From Bugula neritina (taxonomy: Eukaryota; Animalia; Bryozoa), in assembly GCA_964035545.1 (NCBI GenBank), contig OZ037766.1, positions 2,294,001-2,358,000 on the forward strand: 64,000 nucleotides of DNA, written 5' to 3'. The notes under the pieces were generated by a model. It made no database searches and was not told the DNA's origin. It worked only from the letters and a program-made list of their open reading frames with translations. Made by a program: the position numbers and the translations under genes. Below are positions 2,676-49,610 of the stretch, one piece after another; position 1 is the stretch's first letter, and each line of letters opens with the position of its first letter.

Positions 2676-2737
2676 GTTGAAGTTGAATGACAAGCCAACA
2701 GTTCAGCATGTGATGAATTCTAGAGTCTAACCTTCAC

Positions 2738-2745: not shown

Positions 2746-2977
2746 CCCTCAGTTTGGCAGACAAACACTCCAGATTTTATCAAACAGTTGAAGCGTGAGT
2801 TGAAGTCATCTAAAACAGATTTGATATATTGTTTGATCTGAATGAGATTATTCTATAGCGCAACATGCACTGGTAGATATTGCAGGTTTAATGGGCTACA
2901 TATAGACTTCTGAAATATTGCTCTATAAATCTTGCAACAGCTGAGTGTACGTGTTGCGTGTATATTCGAGTTTAATA

Positions 2978-8636: not shown

Positions 8637-8698
8637 GTTGAAGTTGAATGACAAGTCAACAGTTCAGCATGTGATGAATTCTAGAGTCTAACCTTCGC

Positions 8699-16436: not shown

Positions 16437-16504
16437 TATAAAAGCTAAAATTAAGCAGCTGTTTTGTCAGTTTAAGCTTTTGTGCTTGTGTTGTACCCCA
16501 ATAG
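16437..16504 (+). promoter_or_regulatory. G3 core promoter and non-coding exon 1
   Basis: TATAAAAG at 16437-16444, Inr TCAGTT at 16467-16472, donor AG|GTAAGT after 16504, CCAAT at about 16405. Confidence 0.65.
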
Positions 16505-16876
16505 GTAAGTGTTTGTAATATGGTACGATAATTTAAATAATACTTTTTTTGCATAAATATTGAAAAAAAATTGATACCTAAAATAATCATATAGATATAA
16601 AGCATTGATACATAGTATACTAATTTTATCAGCACATATTAACAAATTTATTTTCAAAATGCTGCTAAGGTTTTGAAATATCACAAAATATTTTAAAAAA
16701 TAAAATTGGTAAATCTTGGCTTTAAAAAAGGTTTTGGTAAATTAAACTTTAAAATAATTTTATCGCATAAATTTAGAAGTCTGAAAATTTCTATTTTCTA
16801 GATGCATCACTTATTTTTGTTCAATGAAAATAAAATTTATTTAATGAATGCTATTTTTAGCAGACTGTTTATCACC

Positions 16877-18269
16877 ATGAAGGTAGCCGTAGCCATTTTG
16901 CTGTCGCTGACAGCGTTAGTTTGCTGGTCGGATTGCCTGCAGGGACCTGGAGCAGGATACAAATACCCTAAGGAAATTCACCATGATAAATACCACACTC
17001 TACAGGATCATAAGCAAGGTTATGGGCAAGGTCATAATCAAGGTCATAGGCAAGGTCACAGGCTTTCAAATGTTGTGCAACACAGATTGACAAAACACTA
17101 CAGCGCAGGACACAGAAAACCATTGTGAGTTGCTTCCTCTATCAGTTAGACATTTTATCACAGTGTCAGCTATTTATAGATACCATTACTTCTAAATTTT
17201 TTTAATCTCTAAAAAAATTTTGCTAGTAGGATTACATAACATATCAGATTGCACAACTAATATAAATATGCATGCAATTAGATATATGCGCATAAATTAT
17301 CTGTATTTAAGACTTTGATGCGATTTACGGCATTTTCTCGAAAATTCAAGACACATGCATCTTTCAGCTCGAATATAAAATACAAAAATCAAAAGATAAA
17401 ATTCGGTAATTTTTTGAATTATTACCAAAAAATTTGTAAAGCAGGTTTGGTGTTGGCACAACTAATAGTTGACTAAGATTTCTCATTGCTTCTATATTTT
17501 TATACTTGCTGGTTACTGCTTTTTACCAACAATACATATATATATTATGATTTTAATTAGTTTGATTGTTTGAAGCATTTTGAAAACATAAAATACTTAA
17601 TTTTGGCTAGTAATAAATAAAATTTAGGTTTCACTTTATTTTGTTTCTTTTAACAGTTGGTATGGGAAGACTAGCAGAGGCAGGCCTGTGATTGGTGTAA
17701 CCAAGGACGGTCGACCAATCACAGCAAAGACAGTAGCAGACCGCAGACGTATTGAAAGGCTTTCCCATTTCAGAAGCCAAAGGACTCAACATCTATCCCA
17801 GCAGCTCCGCAGCAACTTACAGAGAAGGAGAATTCAGAGCAGACGGCAAAGAAACCGAATCTTCCACTCAAGACGTCGGGTTCATGGCCGAGTCAGCAGA
17901 TATCACAGATTTTCCAGTTCCAGTTCTATTTCTAGTTCTAGTTCCTCCTCCTCTGATGATGATGATCTGAAACGTGGCTGGAGACAGATCTTTAGAATGG
18001 GAGGAAGGAAACTTGCTTTACTTCCTGGTTCCGGTTCATCCAGCAGCGACAGCTCATTCCACAGCAGCAGCCAATCAAATGAAAGGAACATCTTCAGATA
18101 TAGAAGAGGAGAAGTTATTCTCTTTGGTAAGAATGGTGACGCAAGAAGACAAATTTTCAACATTGGAAGAGGCAGGCTAATGTTGGGAGACTCTAGCAGC
18201 AGCGGCAGCAGCAGCAGCAGCAGCAGCCAATCATTTTCCTTGGAACAGCATCAGATTAGAAGGCACTAA
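16877..18269 (+). CDS. G3: secreted 286-aa low-complexity protein (His/Gln/Gly repeat, Arg-rich block, poly-Ser/Asp, C-terminal triple-repeat domain)
   Basis: Exons 16877-17124 (TT|gtgagt) and 17657-18269 (taacag|T), joined by a phase-2 intron into an 861-nt open frame. Signal peptide MKVAVAILLSLTALVCWSDC. The C-terminal domain is clearly homologous to G5. Confidence 0.88.
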
Positions 18270-21200
18270 TTACTTTGCTACTTTTGTCCTGCATTATTAC
18301 CCTAAAACTATGCCATTATACAGTGTTTCCTGTTGCTAAATTTCTTTTTAATTTGTTATGAATGTCTTTGACTACAGATACTTCTTCTGTAACTGTACCA
18401 AAGCTTAAAAAAGCTACTTATATCACAACTCTACTGCTGTCAGTTAATTTGACAAATTATCTTTGTTGTAGTTTTGCAATTATTATGTTAATTTAGCAGC
18501 ATAGCAAATTAATTTGCTTATATCTTTCTTTACCTTTTCAAACACCTGTGTTTAAATATAACCAATATGCAAATTTATAGGGTGATGGCTGAGAAATAAA
18601 AATATAATTCTGATAAACAAAACAAACATCTCTTATTATTTAATTTGATTTATCCAAATTATCTTTTATAGGTTAGCTCATTTTTTGCAGCAATTTATAA
18701 TTACCCAAAATAAAACATAATGCTGTCAATTGTTTGACTGATTACTGCATTATCTTTCTCATTGCAACCTAAAACTATAAGAGTGTACTCAAGCATCCAA
18801 TTGGCATAATATAATTTTATAGCAGACCTAAAAAAACAGAGCTATATTAAATAAATAGCAAATATATGTTTTTTCTAATATGTGTACGTACCTAAGAATA
18901 ATGTCATTATATTAATATTCTTGAAAAATGTAAATTACTTAAAATGGTTTTGATTTGTTGAAAATTTTATGGTAGCAGCAACGTAATATTATACGGCAAT
19001 GAAAATGATTATATATAATAGCTCGTAATTCATAATGTATAGTTTACTTACTTTGCAACTTGGCTCTAATATATATTATACTGTAATTATGTTTTTCATT
19101 TTAGCAAAAATACTGCCACAATATGCTTTAAAAATTATGGGTTTGAACACATTAGAAAAAAAAATTCATGTAATAATATAAATTGAGTGAATATTAACTA
19201 TAATGGAACCAGTTTAAATATTGATTTGGTGCCCATGCATGCACATATACCAATTGCAGAAGTTTTGAAGCATTTTCATTTAAAATAAATTGACTAACTG
19301 CAGGGTTTTAAGCAAAATATAATTCTGCTAAAATGTATTTGAGAAAGTAACAATTAATTGTCAAATTGCGCTAGATAATTCTACTGTCAGAATCGCATAC
19401 ATTTTATTAACATATATACTGGCAATTTTTGTCTTGTTTTATCAAGAAAGTATTTTATTTTTCAAAGCCTTACACTATATTTATTGTAAACTTGATATTA
19501 TATTAGATAAAGCAAAATAAGTATGTATAACCAAATATTAATTAAAGAGAGTTATTTCAAGTGCAAAGGGTAACAATTGAATTGCTATACATACGCAAAT
19601 TAAGTCAATAATTTAAATAAAACTAAATGAAAGTAGTAAGTCCAACAAATTTCTTAAAATATTTGACAATGTTTTTTTATAACAATATATTATGTTATAT
19701 GCAACAAATGTTACAGAAAAATTTCTCTTCCTGTAAAAAACCCTGATGTTAAAGTTTTGAAGCTTTCTTAACGACAGCACTTTTGAATAACACATGGAAA
19801 AATGCATGTGGCTTCTTGCCTGGCACTACCTGAATATTCCTGCAGCAGAGATCCCCATGACCTAGTAGAGACTCATCAGATTAGATGTTACGTCAGCAAC
19901 AAACCACAGCTCTCCATATAACTATTATCAATTAACAATATCCTTCATGTTTCAACAATCAACAAAAATCGGAAATATAAAATTCTGAATCTCTTTGCAA
20001 GATTATATAGCATATACGCAAAGAAAGATTTATGATTTATTCATTGTGGCTGGTTATATGAATATGATGTGTCAACTTGTGGTGTGTTGGCTCTATAGCA
20101 AGTGATTATTCATAAATAAATTATAGTTACCTCTCCTATGGCGCTATAATAAATTGATAAAAGCCAATAGGTGCCTAATATATTATTATGCATGCCTATA
20201 TTGGTATATTGTTTATATAGCAAAATATATTTGGTGTATTGCATTTAGTTTTAACCTCAATGTACTGTAAAAAATTAATAAATTAGGAACTTTAATTTTA
20301 GGCACATGGTTATACTAGATATCTACAGCTTTCTACTTTGAAAATTTATATTTAGGTTGAATATTTTTTTATAACTTATTTTTTAAATTCTGAACTAAAT
20401 CTCTCAATTTCAGCTGAAAGAAAACATGCTAGCTAGAGAGATGTTATAATAGAATTGTAAAGTTTCGGCATGTCTATAAATTAATTGACTGCAAGCAATT
20501 TTACCAACAACCTGCCAGCTCTGTGGAACTAAGCAAATTCTTTGTTATAACTGTTATGACATGTTTAGCATTATATTAGAAACAGTATGATACTAATTAA
20601 TTGTGATTGAATTAGAAAATACTGAATGAAATAAATAGCTTCTTTTATGCTATTTTTTGTCTGCACTCTACTTTATTAATTTCTAAATACCTGGAAAGAC
20701 AATATTATATTATAATTTAAATATTTCTATAAGTAATATATCAATAAATCTATATAATAATTATAAATAAATTTAGTGGCACGAAATAAGGGAAGCAATT
20801 GCAATCAATGTAAATTATGACTTTTAAACTTTTGCGCTTTGATTTAACCAGCAACTGCCACAAAAAAGTTTTATTTATATTAAATTTAAGTAATTCATTA
20901 TGTTGGCTAGACACACTTATGTCTTTAAGCTCTTCCTTTTTCCTGTCTGGAGCATTGTATGCAGTGAATAGCAAATACTCAAGTTCAGTCATATTATTCC
21001 CACTACTCTTCAGCTGGAATTTTCCCGAAGGATAGTGTGAGAAAATAAAAATTAGAATGCATTTTTGTTTGACAATTCAAATGAATTGTACGAAGCTAAT
21101 ATTAAACTAATACATGTATATTAAAATTTAGTATAACTATTGAGCATGCAACAGAATATACATGTAGTTCAATTACTAGAATTATTGCACCAAAATTTGT

Positions 21201-23109: not shown

Positions 23110-23186
23110 TATATAAGAGAGAGAAAATTTATAATATTCAGTTACATGCAGTGCTACAGATAGGTTATACAGAAGTTATTATAGAG
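23110..23186 (+). promoter_or_regulatory. G4 core promoter and non-coding exon 1
   Basis: TATATAAG at 23110-23117, Inr TCAGTT with its A at 23140 (30 nt from the TATA start), donor AG|GTAAAT after 23186, acceptor ttttcag at 23500. Confidence 0.7.
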
Positions 23187-23519
23187 GTAAATTATCCAAC
23201 TGTATAATTAATTCAAATTAGATGGTGCATTGCAGAAAAAAATATAATGCTATAGTATAACTAAGTTTTTTTTAATCAACTGAATTATAAAATGTGATAA
23301 GTTAAAAATTTTTTCTTGTTGTAATATTGTATACATAAGACATTTTTAGGGCAACTGATTATATGGATTAGGTATGAAGAATTATTTTGAAGCGCAGCAT
23401 ATAATACTATTTATATAGTAAATTGTTATTATGTTGTTACTCCATTGTTTTATTAATATATTTCAAAGTAGCTAAAGTTGATCTTTGGCTTTATTTTCAG
23501 GTTTAGGTATTGTTTGGCG

Positions 23520-24974
23520 ATGGGCTATTTTTTAACAATGGGTTTGATTATCCTGACATCACTAATGTTGATAGTTTCTGCTTCCTACGCAAGAACCGGC
23601 TCTTACAAAAGTTGGGGCCTATCTCACTACATGCCGAGCGGCACTACTTTGAAGCCAATGAAACCTTTATATCAAAAAACATATTCAGCTGCAGCTTACC
23701 AGCCTGTGACTGCAAAACCGTCTTACAAAACACCATACTATAAACCTCGATACAAGCCCGTAAGACCATACTACAAGACTACAACTAGACGCTATCAAAC
23801 TGTAACTTATACTACACACCGCCCAACAACTACTGTAGCTTTACCACCTGTGCCTACAACCTTCCCACCACCAACCACAACTCTACCACCACCAACTACA
23901 ACTTTTCCACCACCAACTACAACCTTCCCACCACCAACTACAACTTTTCCACCACCAACTACAACCTTCCCACCACCAACAACAACTTTTCCACCACCAA
24001 CTACAACTCTACCACCACCAACTACAACTCTACCACCACCAACTACAACTTTCCCACCACCAACTACAACCTTCCCACCACCAACTACAACCTTTCCACC
24101 ACCAACCACAACTCTACCACCACCAACAACAACTTTCCCACCACCAACTACAACTCTACCACCACCAACTACAACTCTACCACCACCAACTACAACTTTA
24201 CCACCACCAACCACAACTCTACCACCACCAACAACAACTTTCCCACCACCAACTACAACCTTCCCACCACCAACTACAACCTTTCCACCACCAACTACAA
24301 CTTTCCCACCACCAACTACAACCTTCCCACCACCAACTACAACCTTTCCACCACCAACCACAACTCTACCACCACCAACAACAACTTTCCCACCACCAAC
24401 TACCACTCTACCACCACCAACTACCACTCTACCACCATTTACTACAACGAATCTGCCACCAGTTTCCCCTCCAACTCTTCATCCAGTGATATCATCAACT
24501 TTGCCTCCTCGGACAATACTCAGGATTGCACCTCCTCTCATGTAAGTGTCTACAAACTGTTCCTATAAACCTCTAATTAAACTGTAATACCGTCAGCACA
24601 GACCACAGAAACATTGTCTATATTTAATCTATTAGACTATAAAATATTTACTAACAATTGTAACTGAATATATATTAACCAGACAAATAGTTTTATTTTT
24701 TGTTGTTAAAAATTTTGCAAGCACAAAACCTTTTATATACATATAAAATACAAATACTGAAATACTACAAAACCTTTCTTAAAAAACATTATTTTTGTGA
24801 TTCACTAGAGTGGAGCAGCCATTAACACCCCCAAACTCTTTGGAAAGTAGTGAAGAAGACACCAGGCCAAGATCTGTACTCTCTCCCAAACACAGGTTGC
24901 TCAAATCTGACTCATCAGAACTTCTGACAGCTAATTCTGGCTCTACTGGAAGTGGTGCTGACAGTGGAAAGTAA
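23520..24974 (+). CDS. G4: secreted 395-aa protein with a Tyr/Lys/Pro-rich N-domain, a (PPPTTT[F/L])x27 mucin/extensin-like rod and a Ser/acidic C-tail
   Basis: Exons 23520-24541 (AT|gtaagt) and 24809-24974 (cactag|A), phase-2 intron, 1188-nt frame. Signal peptide MGYFLTMGLIILTSLMLIVSA. Tail IVEQPLTPPNSLESSEED...GADSGK*. AATAAA at 25171. Confidence 0.88.
23865..24431 (+). repeat. Coding 21-bp tandem repeat, 27 units (PPPTTTF/L)
   Basis: Unit CCACCACCAACHACAACY followed by a Phe or Leu codon, read directly. Confidence 0.97.
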
Positions 24975-26268
24975 ACTATATCTAGTGTTTACACAAGAAG
25001 CAGAAAGCTGCTGCATGCAATCTAAAAAGGTCATGGCATATTATACAGAGCTACAGTAGCTTAGGAAATTATTATAATAACAATTTTATTTTGCGCTGAC
25101 ATGACTTGGCTTATAAGGACTTGATATTTTCAACTGGCTTTTTTTTTATTTTTATTATAGTTATATCTGTAATAAATTTTGGGTAATACAAAATTTAATA
25201 TAAATTATATAGAACTTTGAAATTTTATTATTTATATTTACATTTATCATTATAAATGCATTTTTATTTTCATCTGTGACTGTTTACACAAAGAAAATTG
25301 AAATTTTTTTATTGAATTTACTTTTTACTAAAATTCTTTTATAGCATATTATGTCTACAGAGTCATGGAGTATAAATATTTTAATTCAGCTGCTTTGAAA
25401 CATATGACTAATACTTCTTTAAGCATTTCACAGCAAATGGCACTCGAATCAGCACTGGCTATAATAGAAGTTTAATTTTTCTATAATATAAGTTCCATCA
25501 AGTAATATAGCAACATATTTTATTTGTAATATATACTAATGCAGATTTTATTCCTATTATCCTCACCATATTAATAACATATATAGCCTTTTGAACATGT
25601 TATATGATAAATACAATTTTAGAATGATTAATTCGCATGTTATTACTATATTATAATTAGCCATATTGTGGCTATGCTTGTATGATTGCCTCATTCAATA
25701 TTGCTTTAATTAAAGGGATCAAGCAGTTTATGATGGAATATTTTGTTGGTGCAATTAAGATTATTTACATACTATTTCTTTTGTATATTCATATATTGTA
25801 TTATAGCTAACTTGTTGTCATAGGCATGCTTTAAGAGAGAAAGCTATGTAAAGCTTGCAGACAAAAAGCTATAGTTTTATACACATATTGTTATACTCAT
25901 TCTTTCTCTACGACTTGGTCTTATAACATGTTAAATGCTCAATAAAGCTTATTCTTATATTAGTACTACAATTTCTGCTTTTTCAGCAATTACCAAGATA
26001 ATAAGCTCGCATAATTTTTCTAGAAACAGAAATTTTTATTATTAGCAGAAAAGTATAATGTTTAAAATTTACTAATTCAAAAGCTAGCTATTTCGGTCAT
26101 TGAGAATTTTTTCTATATTATTTTTTTGTATTAATAAAATGGGAGAAAAAAAATTACTCACAAAAATGAATTAAATTAGAAAGAGATAGTGTGTAATATT
26201 ATTTCTCTTATAAACTATATTAAAAATAAAATTTGGTTATTTTAAGCCAATTATATTTCAGTTTTCAT

Positions 26269-29162
26269 TTAATCAGATAAATCTGATGAGTATAATCCAC
26301 GTCCACTAGCGGAGCCTCCTAACATCAATCTCCCTTTGCCAATGTTGTAAACTTTTTTACTCTGTCTTGAACCAGTTTCCGGAAAAAGCGTTATTTGTGC
26401 TCGACCAAACGTGAAAATATTTCTCCAACCTTCTCCTGATTGGCTACTGCTATCAAATGAGACATCACTACTTGATGACCCAACTCCAGGAACTAATGCT
26501 AGTTTATTTCCGCCCAGCTGGAAGATTTGTCTCCACTCAGGATGTTGACTGCCCAGATACCGAGTATTTCTGTTGACATATCGGGTTCCTTGTGTACGGG
26601 AGTTGTATGCCTTTGACTGGTAAATACTTGGGTTCAACCTAGCTCCTGTTGTTATTGGCCTTTGTCTATTTGTCCTTCCATTGAAACTAAAAAGTAACAG
26701 TAAAACAAAATTATTCTACAGTTTATGTCAAGGTGAAACATTGATTTATATAATTTTTGCTTGACCTGAGATTTGCTTGACCTGCAAGCATGCATTTTTA
26801 GATATTATTTAAATAATACTGCACAAAAAACTACCATTCTGAAAAGTTTTTTCCTATTGATACTAAAATATTTTTTTTTATATTATGTAAAAACATTATC
26901 TTTCTTTAAAATTCTGTTTAAACTCACCCAGGGTTAGCCAAGTTGTAGGGTAAAGAGTTTTGTCCCGGTGATAGATATTGCTGACCCTGGTTATAAATAG
27001 TCCTTTGTCCAAGAGATCCATATTGATATTGAGGAGAATACCCTAAACCTCCTCTCTGATAGGCTCCCCTGCTGCCAATCTGCCCTCTCTGATACTGAGA
27101 GTTTAGGAGTTGCAAGCTGTACAAACTGTTCTGGGAACCTCCAGGTATGAGTCGTCCGCCATTGGCTCCTCCAAACACTGATCTACCTCTACTCCTTTGT
27201 GCATAAAAATTAAACATCAGAAATCAGTTTCTAATGTAGAAGTTAAATTTTGGAATAGACAAAAACACAAATAAGTATTTTAAATTACTGATTCCCTAAT
27301 TTTATTGCTTTACAAAGTGACCAATGCTTGCAGTAATTTAAGTAGAAGCAACATTGGTAAAAAAAAATTATTACTCAATATTTTCATACCATATTATTAT
27401 AATACTGGTATATATTACTCACAACAAAAACAAATGACAATTGTGCCGCCACTCAAAGCATTAGATTATGTTTTTTTGATAAATTTAAATATTTACACAA
27501 TTTTACCAAAGCTCTGTAACCTAGTAAAAGAGTGCGTACATATTGAAAATTATAGTGACAAATTGAAATAAAGAAAATAACAAAATTATTATAATAAAAT
27601 AATTAATATGTTTGTCAATTTCAAATGGACAAAGAAGGCTTACAAAGGTGCTCCAAGGTGGGAAGTTTGTGCATAGGATGTGCGGGCACCATTATAAGGT
27701 GTGCCTGGGTTGTAGTTAACTGAATTGTATTCTATCGGTTGTAGTAGCCTACAAGTATTAGCAAAAGCGAAATGATATTATGGATGTGTCTATAAGAAGT
27801 ATAAATACACAGACTGTCTTAAATAGAATTCCAATGTATAGACAACACCGTTTAGCTTTTGATGTATAACAATGATTTAAAACATATAATATATTAATTC
27901 ATTTGTCCCTGCAATTGGTTTATGCTGCAGTTACACCATCAATATTATACAAAATTTGTTTGTTTTGCATTGTCATTAAATAATGATGATAAATGATATA
28001 AATATTAATTTTATAGAACACAATAGAAATTATAAAATTAACTTTAGCATAGCATTGCCTTACCGAGATCTTGTTGATAGGCCTGGGTTTTGGTAAGCAG
28101 AAGGTGGCTGTAATTTGTGGCTAGTTGCTGACTTTTGGCCTATTGACCCTAAAGGTCTAGAAAACATAAAAGTTATATAATAAATTTTATGAACACCATA
28201 AATTAATTTAAACTATTTTTCGTTTTCTATTATTATAATTGTTAAAATTAGGCATTATTAATGTTAGGATATTATATCTGTTTGCGGTTTTTAACTTACT
28301 GAGTAAGAGAAGGTTGGTTCAATGGTCGGTACGGTAAAGGGGCCACGTGAGGCTGGTGTGCAGTCAGGGAATTCCCCTGAGATAATGGTCTCAGTAACCT
28401 ACAAGGTGAACGTTTTCTGTTAATATAAAAGTACAAAATTTTATGCGCTATAATATATACAATCAAATAAATATTACATGCATATATGTCACAGCTAGGA
28501 AAGCTCTTAGTGATTTATCTAATGAATTTAGGCAAGTTAGGCATCATATAATATATTTTATGTTCATGTCACACAAATTTGGTTTTAATTTCTTATTTTG
28601 AATGATTCTCTAATACAGGTTACGCAAGGCCATATAAGGTTATATAGGAAATATTATTTATTATACGTAACTATAATAAGTGCTCTCAATAGTGAAAAAT
28701 ATTTAAAAAGTTTTATGGTAAAGTTAGTTATAGCTTGATAAAATTATCAACTTGAAAATTCGTACTTTAATTGAATAGTTTTGTATAAAATCCTTATGTT
28801 GCTTTTGTTAGGCAATTATTATTATTTTACTTAACATAAAACTAATCTAATTATGACATTCTAAGTAAAGACATAGTATATAATTGAGCTAATATACTCT
28901 ACCCGGTTTGCTGTTGATTTCTTCGGCCTAGTTGCTGTGGTAAGCCTAGAGTTTTTGAGTGAGAGTAAAAGTTGGGGTTGGGGTGGAGAGGTTTTGCTCC
29001 GTTAGCCTGTGCTGCAAGATACTTGTTGGAGTTTTGCTGGTGAAACGCTTTAGAGAAGTGCTTTCGGGTGGTACCCTGGCTATGATGGCTTGTTCCATTT
29101 ATGGAATAGACCAGCCCAATTCCAAAGCAGAAAACTAGCAGCGGCAGCAAAAGTTTCATCAT
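26269..29162 (-). CDS. G5: secreted ~413-aa Gln/Gly/Ser/Tyr/Pro-rich protein, paralogue of G3 at the C-terminus (6 coding exons)
   Basis: Exons 28903-29162, 28300-28398, 28064-28156, 27644-27748, 26928-27194 (alternative in-frame acceptor at 27188) and 26269-26686. All five introns are GT-AG and phase 2, and the joined 1242-nt frame is open. Signal peptide MMKLLLPLLVFCFGIGLVYS. Confidence 0.85.
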
Positions 29163-29476
29163 CTTAAAAAGTTCCAATAAGTTCTGAAAAACAAACAACT
29201 TTTAAGGCGAAGTTCTATACCAAGTAGAGATTATAAGAATATGTTGCAGTGGTAATCAGTGATTTATACTAAAAGAGAAAGATACAACTTTTGAAAAAAA
29301 ATTGTATACTCCTGTGAGCAACATGGAAAATATTAGAAAAAAATATTAATTATGGTGAAAATAAATTTTTGATCTGCTTTATACACAGACTATATAAAAC
29401 TGCCTATTTTAGTTCTATAAACTGTAATGCTATATTCATAAGTCAAATTAACAAAAACCATATGTTTGCTGCTTAC

Positions 29477-29538
29477 CGTACTCAAAGGAAGGTTTGACAA
29501 AGAGTGTGGAATATTCACAGTGTCAAACTGTTTATATA
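29477..29538 (-). promoter_or_regulatory. G5 TATA box and non-coding exon 1
   Basis: TATATAAA at 29531-29538 (minus), donor CG|GTAAGC at 29477, acceptor ttttcag before 29183 just upstream of the ATG. Confidence 0.7.
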
Positions 29539-30532
29539 CTGCATAACATGATGATATCACCAAATATTTTTCACTATAAACACAACTAAATTGGTACTGC
29601 AATACAAATTCCGCGCTAAAGTTGTCAAAAAGAGTTGTCCATTAGCCTTTAATTTCCACAAGTGATATCCTAATTACATCTGTTCTCTACTTGTTGATGA
29701 TAAATTATGACTAAGCACAATATTTGTTTGCATCTTATAATCGTATGTAATACTTTTATACTATTTACCAATTTATTGTTTTTATTTCGAAATAGCTACA
29801 AGCCTTATTTTTCCTCAGTGTCTTGCAGTGATCAAAATTCTACCTGTGTCAGGTAAAATAGGAAAGGTAAAATTACATATACATACACACTATAATGACT
29901 TCCTTATTTATTGCTTCCACTAAACCATTTACGAAAATTAATTTGACAGGTCATTCCTGCATGATTATATAAATAGATATATATCATATAGATAAACATG
30001 AGGGTCAGGTATAATTATAAACTCAGATAATCTATGCTTTTACAATTGATGAGTCAGAAAAAGATTAATTACCCAGAGTGGCTAATCAATTAAAATATGG
30101 AAGGTGGTATCATTTTACATCATCAATTGGCAATGCCAATTCCCATATAGTCACACATACATGTACATGCTAGCTATAGTCATCCATAAACACCTAATAG
30201 CTACAAACTCTGGTTCTATGGTATAATATACATCATGAAGTTAAAACAGCTCTAATGTTCAAATACTAGTAAAAATTTCTAGTGACTTTTTTCATTTCAT
30301 TATTAATATGATTATTTTTTACTAAATATTTGGAAAACAGCAATACTATAGCTTCCAATATTAGTAGGACTGGTGCTTCTGTGTGCAATGACATATAGGG
30401 GATTGCAGCGTCTATACGGCTATCGATATATTACATATCACACATTAATTAAATGCACTTAAACAAGCAATGGTAAGTATTTTAAGCAAGGATTGGGAAA
30501 ATTTAATGTAGGACAAAAACAATCATGACTTA

Positions 30533-30832
30533 CCCCCTAGACACACTTTGCCGCATTGCAAAAATGTTAAAACGTAAAATATCAGTCATTTTAATGTATC
30601 CAGATTGAAGTTTTTAAAGTTCACTATTAGGTACGATCCATGACACTTTATTGGACAATTATATAATCAAATGATCTATAATTGACACAAAAGTTTTTCT
30701 GTCCAATAGGAGCCTTGTGCAACTTATTTGAATCAAGCAGTGCTTGGTCCTAACTTACAACAACGCGGTATAACAAGAAGCTCGAACATTTGTAAAAATG
30801 GCTGATATTTGCTGTTAAGTGTGAATAGAGGG
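30533..30832. mobile_element. Degenerate, internally deleted relative of the Harbinger-type MITE at 11159-11841
   Basis: Termini CCCCCTAGACACACTT ... AAGTGTGAATAGAGGG flanked by TTA/TAA. Internal CCAATAGGAGCCT...TTGAATCAAGCA.TGCTTG is shared with 11696-11738. Confidence 0.7.
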
Positions 30833-38200: not shown

Positions 38201-40874
38201 TTGCCCCCTCTCCTGCTCTCCACCTCTTTAATCCTTATAAGTGTGAGCAAACTCCTTTGTCTAATCATATTCTTAGCTTTTTCCTCAACTGATTATAACT
38301 CATTGTTTAATTATTTATGGCCAAGTACTTGCATGGCTTATATTTATTAGCTAAAAGGCTGATCGACATTTAAGTGGCTATAAAAACTGTAGCCAGACAC
38401 AAAAACCAAGACAATTTCAAAAATAATTTCGGTTGCCTTTCAGAAGTAATTGAATTTTTTCCTGCCATTGATTTAGATTTCGACTTTGTGGTGAGGAATT
38501 TTTCAGGAATGTGCAGTGAGACTTCAGACTTAATAGTCTAGCCCACAATCCTACTTCAACAAAGCTTCATTTATTTAATGAGGTTTATTATATACTCACA
38601 TTGTACCATAACCGCAATACGTGTAAAACTCTCTTTAAAATGTCATCAACACTCATTATGTGTGTTAGGTGGTGCAAGTCAAATACCACCACCCCACATA
38701 CCAATCAGATTCATGGTGGAGTTTGCAGTTGCTTGTTATTCATAGAAAAGCTTTTAGAAATTGAACATAAAATGCAAATTTTTAGGCGGTAACAGTATAG
38801 CAAGCCTCTTTCTAAAAAACAATTAAAGACTATAATATGTTAAAGCTCAATGTGCAAAAATTGGTGTACTTCTATAAGTACATATTATGAATGCTTCAGA
38901 TCAATTTCATGGACTTTTATTTAGTTACTTTAGATATATATTAAAACTAATCCACTCATTGCTCATAATAACATTATTTTAATAATCTCGGTGTAATCAA
39001 GTTTTTTGAACTCTTATAGAGTTATCCTCTCTGAATAACTAAAGCAAACTAAGTAGCACATGCAGCTGTTCAATTGCCTTAAAATGCTTATTTAAAGATT
39101 TTTTATGACATTTCTTCAAAACTAAGAAAAAGCTCAATTTATATAATACAAAATTATCAAAAGGCTACAAAGGTGAGTACATATATTATGGTCTAATGCA
39201 AAGTGATTTTAATTTGAAACTCCCAAATGTCAAATTCACAATTTTTGGAAACCTTTAGTTAAACAGTTAAACTAGATGAAATTTACCTTCGAAAAATTAT
39301 ATTAAACTTGAAAAATTATGTTTGTCAACACCTAAACTGAAAAAGTTTAGTAAAATTCAAAAAACTTATTGAGTTGTGATTCGCTTTTAATACCAAACTA
39401 TAGATGCTGGTAAATTTGACTTTCTCGCTTTTAATTCCATAGTGTTTTTTATCTTAGTTACATAATTTTAAAATAATATATAATATAATAGCTAGTCTAG
39501 CATATATGCGTACAACTTTTTGAGCACATTACTAATACAATACGTGACGTGATTTGTGAGTGGTATAAAGCAATTTATTTTTAAGGGTAAACCTTTTGAG
39601 TTATCTAAACCACTACTACACAACTCAATTTCCTCTAATTGCATGAAAAATTATTTTTATTGGTTAACTTAATATGGGGTTTAACTTTAAAACCCCATGA
39701 ATATTCCAAAAACATTTTGTTTCAACAAAGAATAATGCGTTCCACTATTCATAAAATAATACGCATAATATTATATAAATTGAAAGTGAATATAGCTTAA
39801 TAGTGATATAAACAGTAAACATATTTTTATACAGTGCTATGGCATTTTATGTGTGGTAGCATATTTGCTTCTGTTGCTATAAGTTATAACTTAAAGTTGT
39901 AATTGCAGAATATAAAATATATAAATTGTAAGGATCGAAGGTTTAATCATTTCCATGATGTCATCCTTTTGCTTAAAGCATTTATATTAATTAGTATCAT
40001 TTGCTTCATTGTTCAGCTTTAGTGGCAAAGGCTCCATGTTAACTTTGAAAATTTGATGACACATCACTTTTTCAAATCTTCTTATTTTAAATGCAAATCT
40101 CTTATACAATCAAATAGAAAACACACTATATATAGTATAGTTGTTGAAATGCTTATTTATACATATACAAGTACCTACAACTTTAAAGAGTATATCATTA
40201 TTATTATAATAGGTGGCTGTACAAGTTTGCTTTATAATTTTATACTAAACAAATTATTTGACGTGTACTGTAATAATACTTAAATGATTATATAAGTATT
40301 TTCCTGGAAGCCAGGATTTTATGCTAATATAATATAGTTTAACCAAGTAATAGAAGTGAAAACAGTATATATTGCACGAAAGTAGCCTTTCTAAACTGAA
40401 CGGACATACATGTATAGTATATTCACAATTCATAGTATTTTCTTCTCAGGCTGATTACTTCACTGAGGAGAAGTTATATGATGTTCTAAGAGTGCTTTAC
40501 GCTAATCATATTTGTGCAAATTGCTACAAAAACTACGGCCAACAAAAAGGATCATTGGTTATTATAGCTTCAGGACTAGTATCGAAAACGTGTGATACGT
40601 AGTTCAAGTAGAAGTCATTGAGGATGTCAGGAAGAGCATCCAATCCTAATTGCTTTTGGGTCACAACATCTTTTAGCCAGTTTAAAACCCCTTATCGTTG
40701 TGATTAAAGAGTGGTGGTATAAGGCTATGTTAAGGTATTGAAATAATTTTACCTGGAATAGTAATTGTTGTTTACTGGGTGACGGTTTCTAACGCTCCTA
40801 ACAATGCCATGGCTGTAGGTTTGAGATACGAAACATACTTCTATCAGAGCTAGTAGCAGCCATAGAACCTTCAT
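35294..40874 (-). CDS. G6: small secreted Tyr/Arg-rich prepropeptide (~67 aa; 3' exons tentative)
   Basis: Exon 40753-40874 encodes MKVLWLLLALIEVCFVSQTYS|HGIVRSVRNRHPVNNNYYS and ends in phase 2 (AG|gtaaaa). Micro-exons 38600-38632 (gtgagt donor) and 36480-36517 (ttttacag / gtaagt) continue in frame as REFYTYCGYGTMYRKRYGQRRWGS. Terminal exon 35294-35304 (AFY*) is uncertain. A 5'UTR exon donor CAG|GTGAGT lies at 41871. Not present in the supplied ORF track. Confidence 0.55.
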
Positions 40875-42698
40875 TCTATCTCAAGTTTACCTTTAAAATA
40901 ATAAGGAAACTCAAGCACATTAAACATATAATATTCACATTTCTACTCAAGTAGAGAGGTTAGCTAGTTTTTGACATGCGTGCTCCTGTAAACCCTTTTT
41001 GAAGTTAGGTTGATTTGGAAATTTTCTCTCTATAGCAACAATTGACTCGCCTATTTCATGCGTCATGCCCTTTGAAAAACTAACGTATCATTAAAATCGA
41101 TTACATAATTTACATAATTTAAAACTTTTACTTGCATCAATAAAGCTTTATTAAACACACCTTGAATAAGTAATTTAATTTAGAAAGTAATTACATAATA
41201 AAATTTGAACAGCTATAAACTGGATGCATTTTTGAAACGTGCCAAAAAAGGTTATAGCACAAATAGTGTTGGTTAGTTGTATTTACAATGGGAAAAGCCT
41301 CAAAAAATATTTCATGTATCTATATAAATGAATGTTTTATCTAAAATGTTGAATTTAGGGTATAAAAGTATTTTAAACATTTTGAGTGCCTTATATAATT
41401 ACACATGTCATAAATACATAATGCATATATATAATTGCAGATGTACAGTAGAAGATCATTCCTCTTATATTTGCAACAAATATTGCATTATCATGATACA
41501 GTTATATTCTGCATTCATAAAATATTAAGACGCTATAGTAACTTTCAGCTAGGGTGCATATTAAAAGATTAAGAGTTTCAAAAAAGCTTTAATGCTACAT
41601 TGTGAATGTTATAATATGCATATAAGTGTATAGCTATACATCAATAATAACTTGTATTAAACAACCTAGCTCAACGTAAATTATGTTTATTAACTTGAAA
41701 ATACTAAAAGGTTGTGAAATAATTGCTAGAATTTAAAGCTTTCATTAATTAAGCTTTTATAGCTCGCAAATTTAGATCAAAAGTTTCAGTTCAGTAATAA
41801 TGAAAATCACAAAATTATTAGTGGAAAATAATTGCCTAAGTAAATCAAATTTGTCAACAGTAAAACTCACCTGGACAGATGGTGTGGGAAAAGAAGATGT
41901 TATATTATATCAAGCTTTGAGTGCTTTTGTCGAATGTATCTATAAACATCTATTATAACCAGAAGAAGAACTGGAGAGAAAACCAATTGACTAGAATGTG
42001 GTGTTTACCAGGAGCAACTCAGCCTTATAAATTCCTTACATGAGCTCTCAGTATACCTGGGTGACCTTTTCCTTGCCTTGAATCTGTATGAAGTGGCTTA
42101 TTTACCAACTGACAAACTCACATTGGCTACACAATAGTGCCAATTACTCATCCCAATTTACATAAATTTGCATACTTTGGTAATCAGTCGTCGTATTCAA
42201 AGGTAACTCAAAGGCGACACGCCATAAACATTTTCCTACCTATGTGCTAAACTCAATCAACAACATAGAAGTCTTGCTTTACGTCACAAGTTGTATAGGA
42301 AAGTCACATTGAAGGGTGGAATTGTTGGGTGGACAGATCTCTGCAATGCTACGGAGCCAACCAAAAGGGCGATGACTAGAAAGAGTTGATAGAATTCTGA
42401 CTAAAGTAATTAATATTCAAAGAATTTACTGCAATATATTAAACCACATATGGGGAAGTAATATGTTACAAGTGCGCATCATCTATGGATAATATTACTG
42501 AATAGTAACTCAAACTCATTATACCAGTGGCTACAGTATAATACATAACATTGTTGAGGCAATGTAAGTGTAGACTAGGAAACGGCAGGCATATTTATAT
42601 TATAATTCATCATCAAACTAGTTGAAGTTGTTTGTTCTGAAGTTTTCATAAACAAAATACAATCAGATATTATATTATATTATATATACATGTATATA

Positions 42699-44456
42699 CA
42701 GTGATGTGAAAAAGTTTAAGGACGCTTGCAGAAATTTCTATGTATCTTGTTTAATAGGCATTTCTTGTAAGTTCCTAATATTTTCCTGCAAGTTCTATAT
42801 ATCAAAATGACCCTTAGAATATGCTCTACAATTTCCACCTTCTAAATTCCTGCTGTTGTGATGTTTTCTACTCATTTTTGGGCCAACTGCACAAGCAGCT
42901 AGGGAAGCGCAACTCCTATATTTTTATGTAACCAAAGTTCATCGACTTTTATAACCACAAAAGGCTAAATAGTGAAATTTGACTTTGTGCATAGCATCAT
43001 GATATCATAAAGTATGGCTTCCTTTTATAATTTGAAATATGTCATTTAGTTGTGAGCTTTTACATGGTGTCCACTTGGGCGCTGCGCATAGACTAAATGA
43101 GAGGTGTAGATCTTCCTTCAGAGGCAAAGTTTGTAATAATTTTCTTGCACAAAGAAGGTTATTCAATTAGGAAAATATCTGAAAAGGTTGGCAAAGTAAA
43201 GACAACTGTACATCAAATTATCAAGAAGTTTATGGACACTGGTAGTGTAGCAGATGGACCTGAAAATGGCCGACCAAAAATAAGCACACCTAGAGATGAC
43301 AAGGTTCTCATTGGGATCAGCAAGTAAGATTGCCATAAAAAAAGTCTTGCGTAGGCAAGGAATAGACAGAATCAACAGGAACACCAGCTTCGACATCCCT
43401 GATAAGGCAAGATTGCTGAGCCATGGTTTACATGGCCGCAAAGCAAGAGGAAGCCTCAACCAACCGAGAAGCAACAAAAAAGTCGGTTACGGTGGGCCAG
43501 GGAGCCTGGTAATTAGACAGTGAATGATTAGAAAAAAAGTATTTTTTTCAGATGAATCCATATTTAATGTGAACAATCATGCTGGAAACTGTTGTGTTAA
43601 AAGGTACCAGTATGAGAAATATAACTCTTAATGTATTCTTCGAACAATTAAGCACCCTATCGGTGTTATGTTCTGGGGTTGTATAACATCAAAAAGCGTA
43701 ATTGCTCTGGAATGATGTTAATGCTCAAAAATATATGGAGAATCTCAATGCTAAGCATCTTCCAATCATAAAAAACTTCTTTTTAAATGAAATTAACATA
43801 TTTGAAGATGACAATGCACCATGCCATTGGGCAAAAACTGTTAAAAAGTGGATGAAAAAGCAGAGGGTCTCAACGCTTAACTGGCCAGCACAAAGCCGGG
43901 ACTTGAACCCAATAAGAAATTTATGGTCAAGAATGGCTAAAATAGTCTCTTCACAGAAGCCAACAACTAAGGTGACACTCATAGAGCCTGTAATTCATGC
44001 ATGGCGTCATGTCGTGACTGAAAACGAGTTGGAGAAGCTGTACGAGTCGATGCCTCGTCGCTGCCGACTGGTGATTGAGAATAAAGGCTGGCCAACAAAA
44101 CATTGATACTAAAATTCAAAGCACTGTGTGTTGCAATGCTGCTATAATGTGTATAACAATTTACATATAATATTTTTCTATGTTTCAAGTAAAATATTCT
44201 GATGTCTTACAATACACACAAATTGTGAGAACATTAAATAATTCCCATATATGCATAGTATCTCATTGTTTTACCCAAATCTTTTGGAGGATGTAAAAAG
44301 AGAAACTTATAATCTATATGAATGAGATAAGGAGATCTTAAGGATCATTTTGATAGGCACCATGCCTATGGAAATGCATTAGTTATGTCTTAAAATTAGC
44401 TTTGAACATTGCTATTATGGAAAACAGGGAGGCGTCCTTAAACTTTTTCACAGCAC

Positions 44457-44458
<2 letters not shown>
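42699..44458 (+). mobile_element. Tc1-family DNA transposon, full length (1760 bp), inactive
   Basis: 27-bp TIRs CAGTG(A/C)TGTGAAAAAGTTTAAGGACGC with 1 mismatch, a TA TSD, and internal transposase remnants. Confidence 0.95.
43097..44106 (+). pseudogene. Tc1 (DD34E-type) transposase pseudogene
   Basis: HTH region GYSIRKISEKVG..TVHQII, GRPK linker, FSDES, FEDDNAPCH and WPAQSRDLNPIRNLW. Broken by stops and frameshifts. The position 34 residues after the second Asp reads R instead of E. Confidence 0.92.
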
Positions 44459-44508
<50 letters not shown>

Positions 44509-44529
44509 ATATATTTATTATTATTATTA

Positions 44530-44597
<68 letters not shown>
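44459..44597. repeat. (TA)n tract abutting the right TIR of the Tc1 element
   Basis: Read directly; interrupted by a short (TTA)n. Confidence 0.95.
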
Positions 44598-44601
<4 letters not shown>

Positions 44602-46679
44602 CGATGCATGTCAGAGTATTTTATTTCATATATACAACAGTTTGTCAATCTGAGCTATAGACTTGTCAGTTTTCCCTTGAATATAATATATAGCTATAAA
44701 CTCACGTGGCACAGGCACTATTTTAATATTTTTCCTCATGCATTAGGTTTCATTAAGAGTTTTCTTCTCAATTTTATAAGGAGCTTATCCAACTTTCTGC
44801 AGGTAGCTAAGTAATGATCTGTGAATTGCTAATCTGCAAAACATTCACATTAAACTTATCATAAACATAATAAAGATATATATAAATAGACATATAAGAT
44901 ATGCATTGAAATTGCTAGGAAAATTAAATAAAAGTAATTTGTAACTTGTTTTTATGAAACATAAAAAACTTCTAAATGTTTAAATTTCAACACAGCAATT
45001 GATTGAGCCTTTCACACATACATTTATATAAACATATAACTATAATCAATATAGTATATATGTTATAATAATACATTAAATACAATAATTATATTTCTAA
45101 CGTCACCAGTTTGTATATTTGGAGTAGCCTGCACTATAAACATGAGAAATTTATGTTTATGTTGTATTACTGTTATCATGGCAACCATAAACCTATAATA
45201 CTATATTATTCTATAATGTTCTATTCTACAAATTGCATAAAATTTCCCTCATGAATTTTTAGTAGTTTTTAATTTTCTTTATTTGATTAGTATTATTCAG
45301 TTGCATTGAAATTTCAGCTACTTTAAAATCTGTCACAAGCCAGTTATAGTAATATGTAAGCTACTTAGAGTCGCATTATAGCCGCAGGAGACCACAACTC
45401 CAGTTACTGCAATTTAATTTATTTAGGCCGTCAATAGTGGCTATAAATAAACTAAAATAATAACATGATTATGTTATATAATATAATTAAAAATGTATAA
45501 TAATTGAAATATGAAATTAAGTTAATATAATGCGTTAACTAATGAATGATAATATAGATAGTATTAATACCATAGTTATAACATAATAACCTAAAGGTAT
45601 GCTGTACATATACAATGCATATTCATGATGGACCGTAGTATAAATATTTTCTAAATTTACAATATTTTTATGTAGCATTTGGTAGAACAAAGAAGCAGAT
45701 ATATGGTTTTATTTCAGCGGTACTATATATATTACTGCCTGTAGAACAATATGAAAGAATACATACTTTCAACAGATTTTCGTATCATGTAAATGCATCT
45801 CGCTATATAGTATAATCTAATCTTAAATTTATAATGCAGTTTCAGTTTAAAATAACTCATAATTATTATATTAAAATTTTGCAGGGCACTTATTAGCTGG
45901 CAATAATAAATTAATATATTAGATAAATGGTTATGAATTAGCTATAATTGCCTTTTGATTCATGTGAAAATAGAATAAATTATAATGGTATTGTAAAGAT
46001 AATATAGCCGTTTCTTTGTTCACTCGGGCTACCTCAGGCTTTGTGGTTAGGGAATATTAGCTAGGTTTATAGCCTGCCTGCTGCTTGGTTTGAGTAGCTT
46101 TTGAATATAAGCTTAATTCAATGAACACTGAGAGCTTTTATTACATAACCATGCATCTGATAGATGAGTCTTAGCTTTAGTTTCAGCCTTTTTGAATAGT
46201 CAGATCTAGTTTGTCAGTAGTCACAAATTTAACAATATAATAACTATAAATAGCCCGTCAGCAGGAGACCAAAAGTCAGTAGAAACTCAGTTTTTTAACT
46301 TTATATTTTGTTGCATATATAAAGTCCTGTATTCCATATTTTGTAGTCCATAAACCGATATATGTTACACCATGCACCCACATATTTTATGGCTTTTATT
46401 TACATTTTGTTTCTGTGTTAGTATATTTTATTAAACGTACTTTACCTAGAATTCACGGTCTACCATAAGATCATCAGTAAAGAGCAGTGAAATAACTCCA
46501 TGCACCACACTGACACCTTTACTTAGCACAATTTAAATCCACTACAGCAAAACCTCTATACCAGAGTGAAATGTTCCACATGCAGATACAATATTTAGAG
46601 CTGTAGCTGGCGCGGTATTAGAATGCAGAAAGGGCAATATTATGTATGAGTAATTAGTTTTAAAATTATCTGGACTATA

Positions 46680-47355
46680 ATATAAAGCTTTAATTCAAAA
46701 GATGCTGAAATATAGCCATCCCATGCATTACTGCCTAGACTTAAGAGTCTATAGTGCTATAAAAATTTGAATTTCTCTATCCAATGCCTAAACTATACAA
46801 GCTTTAAAAACATGTTAGATAGTTTATTATAAGGAGTTGCTTTCTGCAGAGATGGGGTTTGAAAATCAGGTGTATTTTTGAAAAAAATGAAAATGGAAGA
46901 ATTGCTACTTTAACAAAACAAAAGTCAAAAAGTTCAAATAAATATAAGGTATATATAAATTATATATACCTTATATATACCTTATATATAAGGTATATAT
47001 AAGGTATATATACCTTATATATACCTTATATATAAGGTATATATAAGGTATATATACCTTATATATACCTTATATATAAGGTATATAAAGCTTTTATAAT
47101 GTATGATGCTGAAGATTATATACCCGGCACATAATTGCTTTTATAGACTTGCATTGTACAAAAACTTTGAATCTCTATCCAACGCCTAAAGTAGAACATG
47201 CTCTGATATATTAGATTATTTATAAGGAGTTGTTTTCTGCAGGGATGGGGTTTGAAAACTGCGGGTTTCTTTATGCCAGGAATAAAAATTGAAGGTTTGC
47301 TACAACGATATGTTGTTCACCAAAATCCAACTTTAATAAAACCACATTCAAAAGG
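46680..47355. repeat. Diverged ~260-bp direct duplication (about 46680-46936 and 47083-47355) separated by a palindromic 11-bp minisatellite (46943-47087)
   Basis: Shared blocks TCTCTATCCAA.GCCTAAA and TTATAAGGAGTTG.TTTCTGCAG.GATGGGGTTTGAAAA. The spacer is built from TATATAAGGTA and its reverse complement TACCTTATATA. Confidence 0.85.
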
Positions 47356-48213
47356 TCATTTGCAATTGCAGCGTAGCTGCATGCCTCACTGCTAACAAAT
47401 AAGAAATGTTATTAGGCTCAACACTATTGTTATAGCCTAAAACCAAAACTCAAATCATGAGTTCTTTTGCAAACTTTTTCAAATTTTTTAGTAAAGGCTA
47501 AAAAAGATGTTTCTATAATATATGCATGGTATCGAATAGCGTACATATAACAGTCAGTAGATACTTTAATGATAAAGAAATAAGCATTCTGAGATTTCAT
47601 TGAACTTGTTTTATATTAAAATGAAGTTTTTAAGCTTTTCTCTTATACTCTTAAACCATCGATAGAGGCTATAGTGAGCCTAAGTGTTGATTTATTTAAT
47701 AACTGTGCTTTTGATTGCTATTCAACTAGTTGCATGTGTAATTGGGGGAAATTGTTTTATACACATTTTGTCTTTTCTTTGTGATATTCTGAAAAGCTGC
47801 ACCTTAAATTATAATAATCAAATATGCAACAAAAAACATCTTTCCATAAAATGCTCATATTAATTGTTATTTTTTTTGATTAGCTCAATTTGACAAGACA
47901 TAAGTTAAAGTGAGTTATATAAACAGTTGGACATAGTTTTTGGGATATTTTATTTAACCATCAACATGAAAATGATATTGTAAACTATTGTTTTACATGA
48001 AACAATAAGTGAATGACAACAAAATGCAATAACTGGTAGTAAAGCTGTTTCTACTCCGACTATAATGTTGAACTCATTTGTTTGTATATAGCTAAACTTA
48101 GTCTGCAACAACAATTACATGTTTAGGTTAGAATTATTAATTATGCATGTTTTCAATCAATCCAGATCTGTGTCATTTTCATTGATCGGTTAATACAATC
48201 AAGGATGTAGTTT

Positions 48214-48700
48214 TTATGGGTTCAAAGATTGAGGATTTTCATTACCATGAACAATAGGGTGTTCTGTAGAAGGTTTCTTTGGCGGTGGTCTGCAACAACA
48301 AAGTAATAATACCATTATATAAGTACTTGAATAACAATTGATAAATGTTTCAATAAAAAAGACAAATTTGTGTGCCTAAATTCATTATTTAAATTTTAGC
48401 CTACAAATAACAATTGAAAACTTTCGCTATTATAAATACTCGATCATTCTTGGAATTCAAATAAATCCTACAGTGAGCTTTCTAATAAAAAAGCTATAAG
48501 AGTATTATTTCATGTTCTATATTACAATTATATAGCATTATTGAAGCAGTTAAAAATGCATTGAGTAAACTGGTATTATATAACTGGATAATATCCAGCT
48601 GGAATATGAATACATACCTTTCCTCTCCTTGCAGCGGAGCTTGCATACCAAGAGACAGTACAGCTAGACATAAGACCAGTAAAAAGGCAAAGATCTTCAT
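48214..48700 (-). CDS. G7: 52-aa secreted Pro-rich peptide precursor
   Basis: Exons 48618-48700 (AG|gtatgt, phase 2) and 48214-48289 (ttgcag|A) give MKIFAFLLVLCLAVLSLG|MQAPLQGEERPPPKKPSTEHPIVHGNENPQSLNP*. Acceptor ttttcag before 48725 upstream of the ATG. Confidence 0.75.
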
Positions 48701-49519
48701 TTTAGCTTCAACGGTTTTTCGGAGTCTGAAAATATAAAATATTATTCTATAAAATAGTTTATGTTGTGCCTGAGCTTATCTGTTTATAGTATAAAGCATT
48801 TAGTATATGCATTTCAGGTAACCAGTGGTATGTTGCAATTGGTTTCAAAATACAAAAATTTTAGACCAAAAGATTTTGGAGTATTTTTGTATTAAATATT
48901 ACAGAAATATCATAATCACAAGAATAATATTTAAATGCATTTATATTCCATTAACAATAGAAATAATATTATTCATAATATTTTGCAAATCATAACAACG
49001 AAATTAAAAAACAACATTGGCGTAAGTAAATTAGTAGTCATATTTATAGATATATAGATTGATATACAAATAATTGCTGATTTTATATATAGGTACCAGA
49101 AATTAAAATGCTGCATCATAACTAGTTTTAATAAATTTGTTGGTAAACAGTTACTCGCACCTGTACAATATCTAAACTCAGTTATTTCAATAAGCATTTA
49201 TAAAATAGAATACATTTTAACAATTTTTTGTGTACAATTTCTTTTTATTAATATACCCAATTTTGTATAAGTAAATGAGTTAAATAATAGCATAACATTT
49301 CCACTAAATGAGAAAAATTTTCAAATGCTTATGATTCTAACATATAACAATATATTATAAGATTTTTAGATTTATCATATTATTAACGTGATTTTAGAAA
49401 TTCTATAATCTTGCTGCCATCATTACGCATGTACTATTTAGAAAACATTTGCAGAAGCTAAATATAAACTCAATATTACACGCTAAGCTGAAACAAACTA
49501 AATAAAATAATTTTCTAAC

Positions 49520-49610
49520 CTTAGCTTGTGAAGTTTGTAGGATATACTTTGTATATCTGCAGCTGCTGTAGTGGATATAGTGAGTTTCATGCCACCATAG
49601 CACTTATATA
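49520..49610 (-). promoter_or_regulatory. G7 TATA box and non-coding exon 1
   Basis: TATATAAG at 49603-49610 (minus), TCACT Inr-like site about 30 nt downstream, donor AAG|GTTAGA at 49520. Confidence 0.55.

Follow-up and report, generated by a model that had tools for sequence, protein, structure and literature searches.

A bryozoan cluster of low-complexity secretory genes with phase-2 introns: a core family of paralogues and its probable wider membership

A stretch of 64,000 nucleotides (nt) from the bryozoan Bugula neritina (contig OZ037766.1 of assembly GCA_964035545.1, or C2:2294001-2358000 in our numbering; hereafter the window) carries a row of small genes, G3 to G7, predicted to encode secreted proteins of low sequence complexity. 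On balance, we favor the view that the interval belongs to a tandem cluster, restricted to this lineage, whose genes encode such proteins, share an exon-intron skeleton with phase-2 introns and fall into a core family and a wider membership. The core comprises G3, G5 and a third gene, G0, which came to light in a survey of the flanks about 10 kb to the left of the window. A first-pass annotation had described one gene architecture in G3 to G7 and derived all of them from one ancestral secretory gene in spite of little sequence similarity between them. The described architecture is partly confirmed here. G3 and G5 are in fact clearly similar in sequence and share their ancestry with G0, while G4, G6 and G7 are as dissimilar as described and show no sequence link to the others, so that the common-descent reading is only partly supported.

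A domain of some 75 residues, in which a short unit recurs three times, is common to the last exons of G3 (exon 3) and G5 (exon 7), with 46/77 identity and E = 7e-18. The repeat, with the pattern R-x-I-F ... G-x-x-L-x-L, is tripled at the C-terminus of both proteins and absent from G4, G6 and G7; one weak copy can be recognized by eye in G0. The last exons of G0 and G3 are further related at their beginning (18/27 identity, E = 2e-9), and a motif of the form W/F-x-G-R/K-T-S/N-R-x-R-P opens the last exon of G0, G3 and, in a diverged version, G5, with no counterpart in G4, G6 or G7. In all three genes this motif begins at the first full codon past the phase-2 acceptor, and for this reason the intron before it can be taken as genuinely ancestral. 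Judged from these alignments, G0, G3 and G5 are paralogues that inherited a phase-2 intron from their common ancestor, and what they have in common is the 3' exon rather than the 5' exon. A search of the whole assembly (216,009,554 bases) with the G0/G3 form of the motif recovered no further locus. In composition, exon 2 of G0 is His-rich and then Pro/Thr/Arg-rich and is followed by a phase-2 intron, and its last exon (299 codons) is acidic and Ser-rich with repeated S-F-E-D units.

The four additional exons of G5 (exons 3 to 6) occupy the position of the single coding intron of G3, and every one of them is 2-2 symmetric. Exons gained inside a G3-type phase-2 intron must be of this class, because it is the only one that keeps the frame. 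Comparison of G5 exons 3 to 6 with one another detected no similarity beyond that of shuffled controls and no sign of recent duplication. For exon 3 an acceptor at 28416 was also considered; in the sequence of a relative, a 1-nt indel and a stop codon separate the two candidates, and the acceptor at 28398 was preferred.

The gene models were read from the genomic sequence with frames checked by script, and open reading frames (ORFs) guided the placement of exon ends. Comparison with a sibling species bears these models out for G3, G4 and G5. One sibling contig (L001, a Logan contig of SRR4020080) runs from within G3 exon 2, of which it has the 3' part, through the intron and exon 3, and keeps both the donor and the acceptor of the coding intron; indels relative to it measure 9, 3, 3 and 6 nt in exon 3 and 2, 1, 4, 2, 1, 1 and 4 nt in the intron. 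A second (L032, a 9.8-kb JGI metagenome contig) spans the whole of G4 and G5. In G4 the acceptor, the ATG, the GTAAGT donor, the exon-3 acceptor and the stop codon are all kept, and exon 3, apart from one insertion of 9 nt, matches at 94.6% identity, to be compared with 77% identity in the flanking intron and 79% downstream, both with indels that are not multiples of three. The exon-1 region of G4 shows indels of 4 and 5 nt, fitting an untranslated region (UTR). In G5 all 12 splice sites are kept, including the exon-1 donor; exons 2 and 7 are 94.2% and 93.8% identical with no indels (the orthologous ORF of exon 7 is P0002), and the sole indel in exon 6 measures 6 nt, with the splice sites intact. 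When the comparisons were pooled, all six coding indels (in 2541 nt) were multiples of three, as opposed to 48 of 220 non-coding indels (in 9423 nt; Fisher p = 1.5e-4), and indel density was 2.4 per kb in coding versus 23.3 per kb in non-coding sequence. Substitutions in G5 fall on codon positions 1, 2 and 3 in the proportion 26/20/54 (p = 5e-5); such a bias is expected only when the phases of all five G5 introns are right. By these comparisons the seven phase-2 introns of G3, G4 and G5 are well supported.

Allelic variation points the same way. Contigs assembled from X1, the only run covering the locus, show ATT inserted in frame in G5 exon 2 and a net loss of 3 nt in exon 3, and their intron indels are mostly of 1-2 nt (one of 3 nt and one of 4 nt). 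Between window positions 27820 and 28508 the same run also contains a second haplotype whose divergence reaches about 8% in stretches (38 differences in 444 nt), which points to very high heterozygosity or to mixed colonies in the sample.

The architecture attributed to G3 to G7 by the first-pass annotation consists of a non-coding first exon, an ATG near the start of exon 2 with the whole signal peptide inside that exon, and a phase-2 intron that follows it. A signal-peptide scan of the window yielded five candidate start exons, with ATGs at 16877(+), 23520(+), 29162(-), 40874(-) and 48700(-), and the described layout was recovered in the models of G3, G4, G5 and G7, which have three, three, seven and three exons, respectively. 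A TATA box is present at all five genes. It is followed by a putative non-coding exon 1 of roughly 35-60 nt and a 5'UTR intron, the distance from TATA box to exon-1 donor being 62-77 nt in G3, G4 and G5 and about 90 nt in G7, and the acceptor lies 13-25 nt before the ATG. The coding sequence within exon 2 varies widely, from 83 to 1022 nt (248 nt, or 3n+2, in G3). The window as a whole is AT-rich (G+C about 30%), and islands of at least 42% G+C sit on every modelled coding exon. The rebuilt models contain eight coding introns (one each in G3, G4 and G7 and five in G5), all of them in phase 2 with GT-AG ends; in G4 the junction reads AT|GTAAGT. For G6 the start exon alone was recovered, with a longer TATA-to-donor distance of 111 nt. 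The first-pass count of ten phase-2 introns among 11 thus holds for these eight (nine by another tally of the reproducible phase-2 introns), whereas the three introns it had assigned to G6 were not reproduced. A search for RNA runs of the locus found none, so G6, G7 and all first exons stay models.

The pattern extends beyond the window. Besides G0 on the left, three genes 6-20 kb to the right (R1-R3) encode Arg/Gly/Tyr/Phe/Asn-rich secreted peptides; each starts with a TATA box and a non-coding exon 1 and places its ATG in exon 2; their first coding intron is in phase 2, and the composition carries on over the junction in the phase-2 frame. Across G0, G3, G4, G5 and R1-R3 the TATA-to-donor distance stays within 62-83 nt, and it is identical (68 nt) in G0 and G3. 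A TATA box, a donor 62-90 nt further on, an acceptor 13-32 nt before the ATG and a first coding intron in phase 2 were found together in G0, G3, G4, G5, G7 and R1-R3, and in the 264 kb examined all genes for low-complexity secreted proteins that have a coding intron begin with phase 2. At the ends of two of the R1-R3 peptides we also observed a nearby G-R-K, a possible site of amidation or processing.

The weight of this shared phase depends on its background frequency. Introns usually follow the order 0 > 1 > 2, and proteins with signal peptides favor phase 1 (PMC1626468), in agreement with the earlier statement that phase 2 is normally the least common; measured against this norm, the phase-2 introns described here are unusual. 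Locally, too, phase 2 is clearly not dominant: a crude and noisy survey of the 264 kb outside the family, which counted unique open frames next to strong splice signals where G+C shows a step, found it at 21 of 49 donors and 13 of 56 acceptors. A first pipeline for the phase background, based on pairs of signal peptides and donors, favors phase 2 by construction and was dropped. A binomial test on ten of 11 introns, as proposed in the first-pass annotation, overstates the case, because the G5 introns are not independent, G3 and G5 are paralogues and G6 is ambiguous. There is also an ascertainment effect: phase-2 donors of the types NN|GTAA and NN|GTGA produce an immediate in-frame stop, so modelling guided by ORFs, which end at just such junctions, finds them preferentially, and eight of the nine donors here halt read-through at once.

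Several findings weigh against extending the family beyond its core. When lineages are counted instead of introns ({G0, G3, G5}, G4, G7 and possibly G6), a chance match in phase has p ~0.01-0.1, depending on the background frequency of phase 2, which is suggestive and not decisive. Comparison of exon 2 and the last exon of G4, G6 and G7 with those of G3, G5 and G0 and with one another gave nothing above shuffled controls (signal-peptide z-scores were slightly raised, as expected between any two signal peptides), and a search for DNA repeats common to these genes found none apart from simple repeats. The ORF of G6 ends in AG|GTAAAA, which may be a phase-2 donor or, equally, a true TAA stop. Orthologous sequence was searched for and not found for both G6 and G7. 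In the neighborhood, the second coding intron of R3 is probably in phase 1, so the wider group does not keep to phase 2 throughout. An unrelated cluster of Cys-peptide genes on the left and a fourth relative (R4, ~144700-144900 in window coordinates), whose entire coding sequence lies in one exon, share the 5'UTR-intron layout and have no coding intron; small secreted genes here therefore share this layout in general, and what sets the group apart is the phase-2 intron alone. Finally, all models were made from DNA, and so is X1: its depth over 23480-29479 is even across introns, with no splice joints.

Alternatively, only G0, G3 and G5 may form a family and G4, G6 and G7 may be unrelated neighbors, whose phase-2 introns reflect coincidence and ascertainment and whose 5'UTR-intron layout is simply common. 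We consider this possible though not our expectation. It agrees with the lack of similarity beyond shuffles or of paralogues for the three genes, with the same 5' layout in unrelated Cys-peptide genes, with the weakness of the G6 donor GTAAAA, which equals a stop codon, and with a probability of 0.01-0.16, according to background, that two to three more lineages match by chance. Set against it are the extension of the pattern to R1-R3 and to every low-complexity secreted gene of the 264 kb that has a coding intron, the tight stereotypy of the TATA-to-donor spacing, the usual preference of secreted proteins for phase 1 (PMC1626468), and the different layout of another secreted gene in the window, G2 (6379-8675, minus strand), whose ATG lies in exon 1, whose signal peptide is interrupted by a phase-1 intron and whose introns have the phases 1, 2, 1 and 2. 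G2 has a paralogue, G1 (about 535-5300, minus strand); both encode secreted Cys-containing proteins without a Pfam match, and phases were modelled for G2 alone, the intron layout of G1 being assumed from paralogy.

A narrower doubt concerns G6 and G7, one or both of which might be chance ORFs or decayed copies, leaving the pattern to rest on G3 to G5. Their ORFs are short; searches with the exon proteins of both, and an ORF scan of metagenome contigs for G7, returned no homologue. A downstream exon for G6 was sought by listing acceptors with open phase-2 frames and scanning Arg/Gly/Tyr/Asn-rich frames, and nothing credible emerged. We nevertheless regard this as rather unlikely, as both genes have a TATA box, a plausibly spaced donor, a good acceptor before the ATG, an N-terminus resembling a signal peptide and a G+C island.

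Under the reading we prefer, of a tandem cluster with a core and a wider membership, G4, G7, perhaps G6, and R1-R3 would have arisen from the same stock as G0, G3 and G5 by tandem duplication. Slippage and substitution would have remodelled the repetitive coding sequence while the exon-intron skeleton was kept, and any exons gained would have been of the 2-2 class, which fits the frame. The 21-nt Pro-Thr array of G4 (window 23850-24450) offers an example of such turnover: it is 402 nt (a multiple of three; 134 codons) shorter in the sibling contig spanning G4, which indicates rapid in-frame change in array length between sibling species. A bolder version of this proposal posits a superfamily specific to bryozoans, with nine or more genes over about 100 kb, from G0 to R3, descended from one secretory ancestor and linked by nothing but the phase-2 skeleton. 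It would supply cuticle, skeletal matrix or adhesive, and the SCPP principle would then have been invented independently; we offer it only tentatively.

The same skeleton could also have spread by shuffling of a cassette, in which a 5' module (promoter, exon 1 and a signal exon with a phase-2 end) was repeatedly copied and joined to unrelated exons, with phase compatibility selecting the viable fusions. R2 and R3, arranged head-to-head, have near-identical leader and signal sequences and divergent mature parts; neither G4 nor G7 has a last exon related to that of G3 or G5, and G5 demonstrates that 2-2 exons are tolerated at the site. This scenario nonetheless appears improbable, given that the signal peptides and 5' regions of G3 to G7 are not detectably alike and that G0, G3 and G5 share the 3' exon rather than the 5' one.

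The encoded proteins are probably disordered and extracellular. Poly-Ser/Asp tracts, S-x-E motifs (in G4 exon 3 and G0), His-rich regions, mucin-like Pro-Thr repeats and Gln/Gly/Tyr-rich regions make it likely that they are building blocks of cuticle, skeletal matrix or adhesive, and it tempers our reading of the cluster that this role is read from composition only. In database terms they are orphans among 15 billion sequences, the exhaustive profile search having been run over 1.84 billion representatives, with exons searched one at a time and spliced translations used only for frame checks. A Pfam scan of all exons gave no match. The profile search with the G3/G5 domain recovered two sibling orthologue ORFs and two spurious repeat proteins, and a word-based search with G3 exon 3 matched the sibling orthologue alone. 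Within the assembly, searches for paralogues of the G4 N-region, G5 exon 2, G5 exon 6 and the last exon of G0 returned self-matches only. Positions of the modelled features are collected in the table.

Table. Modelled genes of the cluster and its flanks, in window coordinates (position 1 is the first nucleotide of the window; negative values lie to its left)
Feature	Position	Strand	Description
G0	about -10640 to -8810 (G000:C2 ~2283360-2285190; last exon L018:293-1189)		Same layout as G3
G3 TATA box and putative non-coding exon 1	16437..16504 (TATA box 16437; exon 1 ~16465-16504)	+	GTAAGT donor after 16504
G3 exon 2	16861 (or 16864)..17124	+	Leader, ATG 16877, signal peptide, His/Gly/Gln-rich region, phase-2 GTGAGT donor
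G3 exon 3 (last)	17657..18269	+	W-x-G-K/R-T-S-R-G-R-P motif, Arg-rich, poly-Ser/Asp, triple R-x-I-F repeat domain
G4 TATA box and putative non-coding exon 1	23112..23186 (exon 1 ~23140-23186)	+	
G4 exon 2	23501..24541	+	ATG 23520, signal peptide, Tyr/Lys/Pro-rich N-region, 21-nt Pro-Thr repeat x28
G4 exon 3	24809..24974	+	55 codons, acidic Ser/Glu-rich tail, S-x-E motifs, stop
G5 TATA box and putative non-coding exon 1	29477..29545	-	GTAAGC donor after 29477
G5 exon 2	28903..29183	-	Leader, ATG 29162, signal peptide, His/Gln/Asn-rich region, phase-2 GTAGAG donor
G5 exon 3	28300..28398	-	99 nt, 2-2 symmetric
G5 exon 4	28064..28156	-	93 nt, 2-2 symmetric
G5 exon 5	27644..27748	-	105 nt, 2-2 symmetric
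G5 exon 6	26928..27194	-	267 nt, Gln/Gly/Tyr-rich, phase-2 introns on both sides
G5 exon 7 (last)	26269..26686	-	Diverged N-motif, R-x-I-F triple repeat domain as in G3
G6 exon	40753..40890	-	ATG 40874, signal peptide, 20-residue Arg/Asn/Tyr-rich tail
G7 TATA box and putative non-coding exon 1	49520..49610 (TATA box 49610)	-	Donor after 49520
G7 exon 2	48618..48725	-	Leader, ATG 48700, signal peptide, AAG|GTATGT donor, phase 2
G7 exon 3	48214..48289	-	25 codons and stop, Pro/Lys-rich; model only
R1-R3	ATGs at 70760, 78345, 84659 (region ~70300-85600; C2 ~2364300-2379600)		6-20 kb right of window

Other features of the window and the assembly were recorded on the way. Between G6 and G7, at 43032-44147 on the plus strand, there is a remnant of a Tc1/mariner-type transposase (DDE_3 domain, E = 1.9e-9). 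A single ORF of 560 codons at 58435-60114 on the minus strand has a Gln/Ser/Pro-rich C-terminus and no Pfam or PDB match, and an Rfam scan of the window gave no matches. Elsewhere in the assembly, contigs C101, C126 and C127 (e.g. C127:14897-16990) contain full-length matches to the myosin head that are broken only by many TAA and TAG codons; this is the signature of a ciliate-type genetic code, so that the assembly probably includes a ciliate associate or contaminant.

Among known systems, the 'simple' genes of the amniote epidermal differentiation complex were likewise recognized by architecture (a non-coding exon 1 and a coding exon 2) and by clustering, not by sequence; unlike the genes described here, they have neither signal peptides nor coding introns. 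The mollusc shell matrix and mussel foot proteins, which belong to lineage-restricted shell-matrix and adhesive secretomes of lophotrochozoans (background in PMC4897951 and PMC5400390), resemble the bryozoan proteins in being orphan, repetitive, low-complexity and secreted, in expanding by repeats and in being often encoded in tandem arrays. They have no homology to the bryozoan cluster. To our knowledge, a shared phase-2 skeleton has not been described as a hallmark of shell-matrix or adhesive families. Bryozoans are a large calcifying and fouling phylum in which the molecules of cuticle, skeleton and glue are almost unknown, and the locus offers orphan secreted candidates for them.

The closest parallel is the vertebrate SCPP cluster, which includes the caseins and the proteins of enamel and of bone and dentin matrix and to which the first-pass annotation had likened G3 to G7. 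Its genes, too, are arranged in tandem and encode secreted, disordered and fast-diverging proteins with acidic, Ser-rich S-x-E parts, as in G4 exon 3 and G0; exon 1 is non-coding, the signal peptide is in exon 2, and one uniform phase lets exons come or go without a frameshift. In contrast, SCPP introns are virtually all in phase 0 (PMC6732285), whereas the verified coding introns of the bryozoan genes are in phase 2; exon 2 of the latter is highly variable in length rather than a fixed short signal exon, and they have no sequence or phylogenetic link to SCPP genes, which descend from the SPARC/SPARCL1 lineage, their own matches being confined to a sibling species. The layout and the single phase hold as an analogy only, and membership in the SCPP family fails. 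The locus illustrates cleanly that, with intron phase fixed, genes for repetitive matrix proteins can acquire exons and lose all recognizable similarity but retain the skeleton. Should the wider family prove true, intron phase combined with clustering could reveal hidden families in unannotated invertebrate genomes, by the logic through which the SCPP genes came to light.

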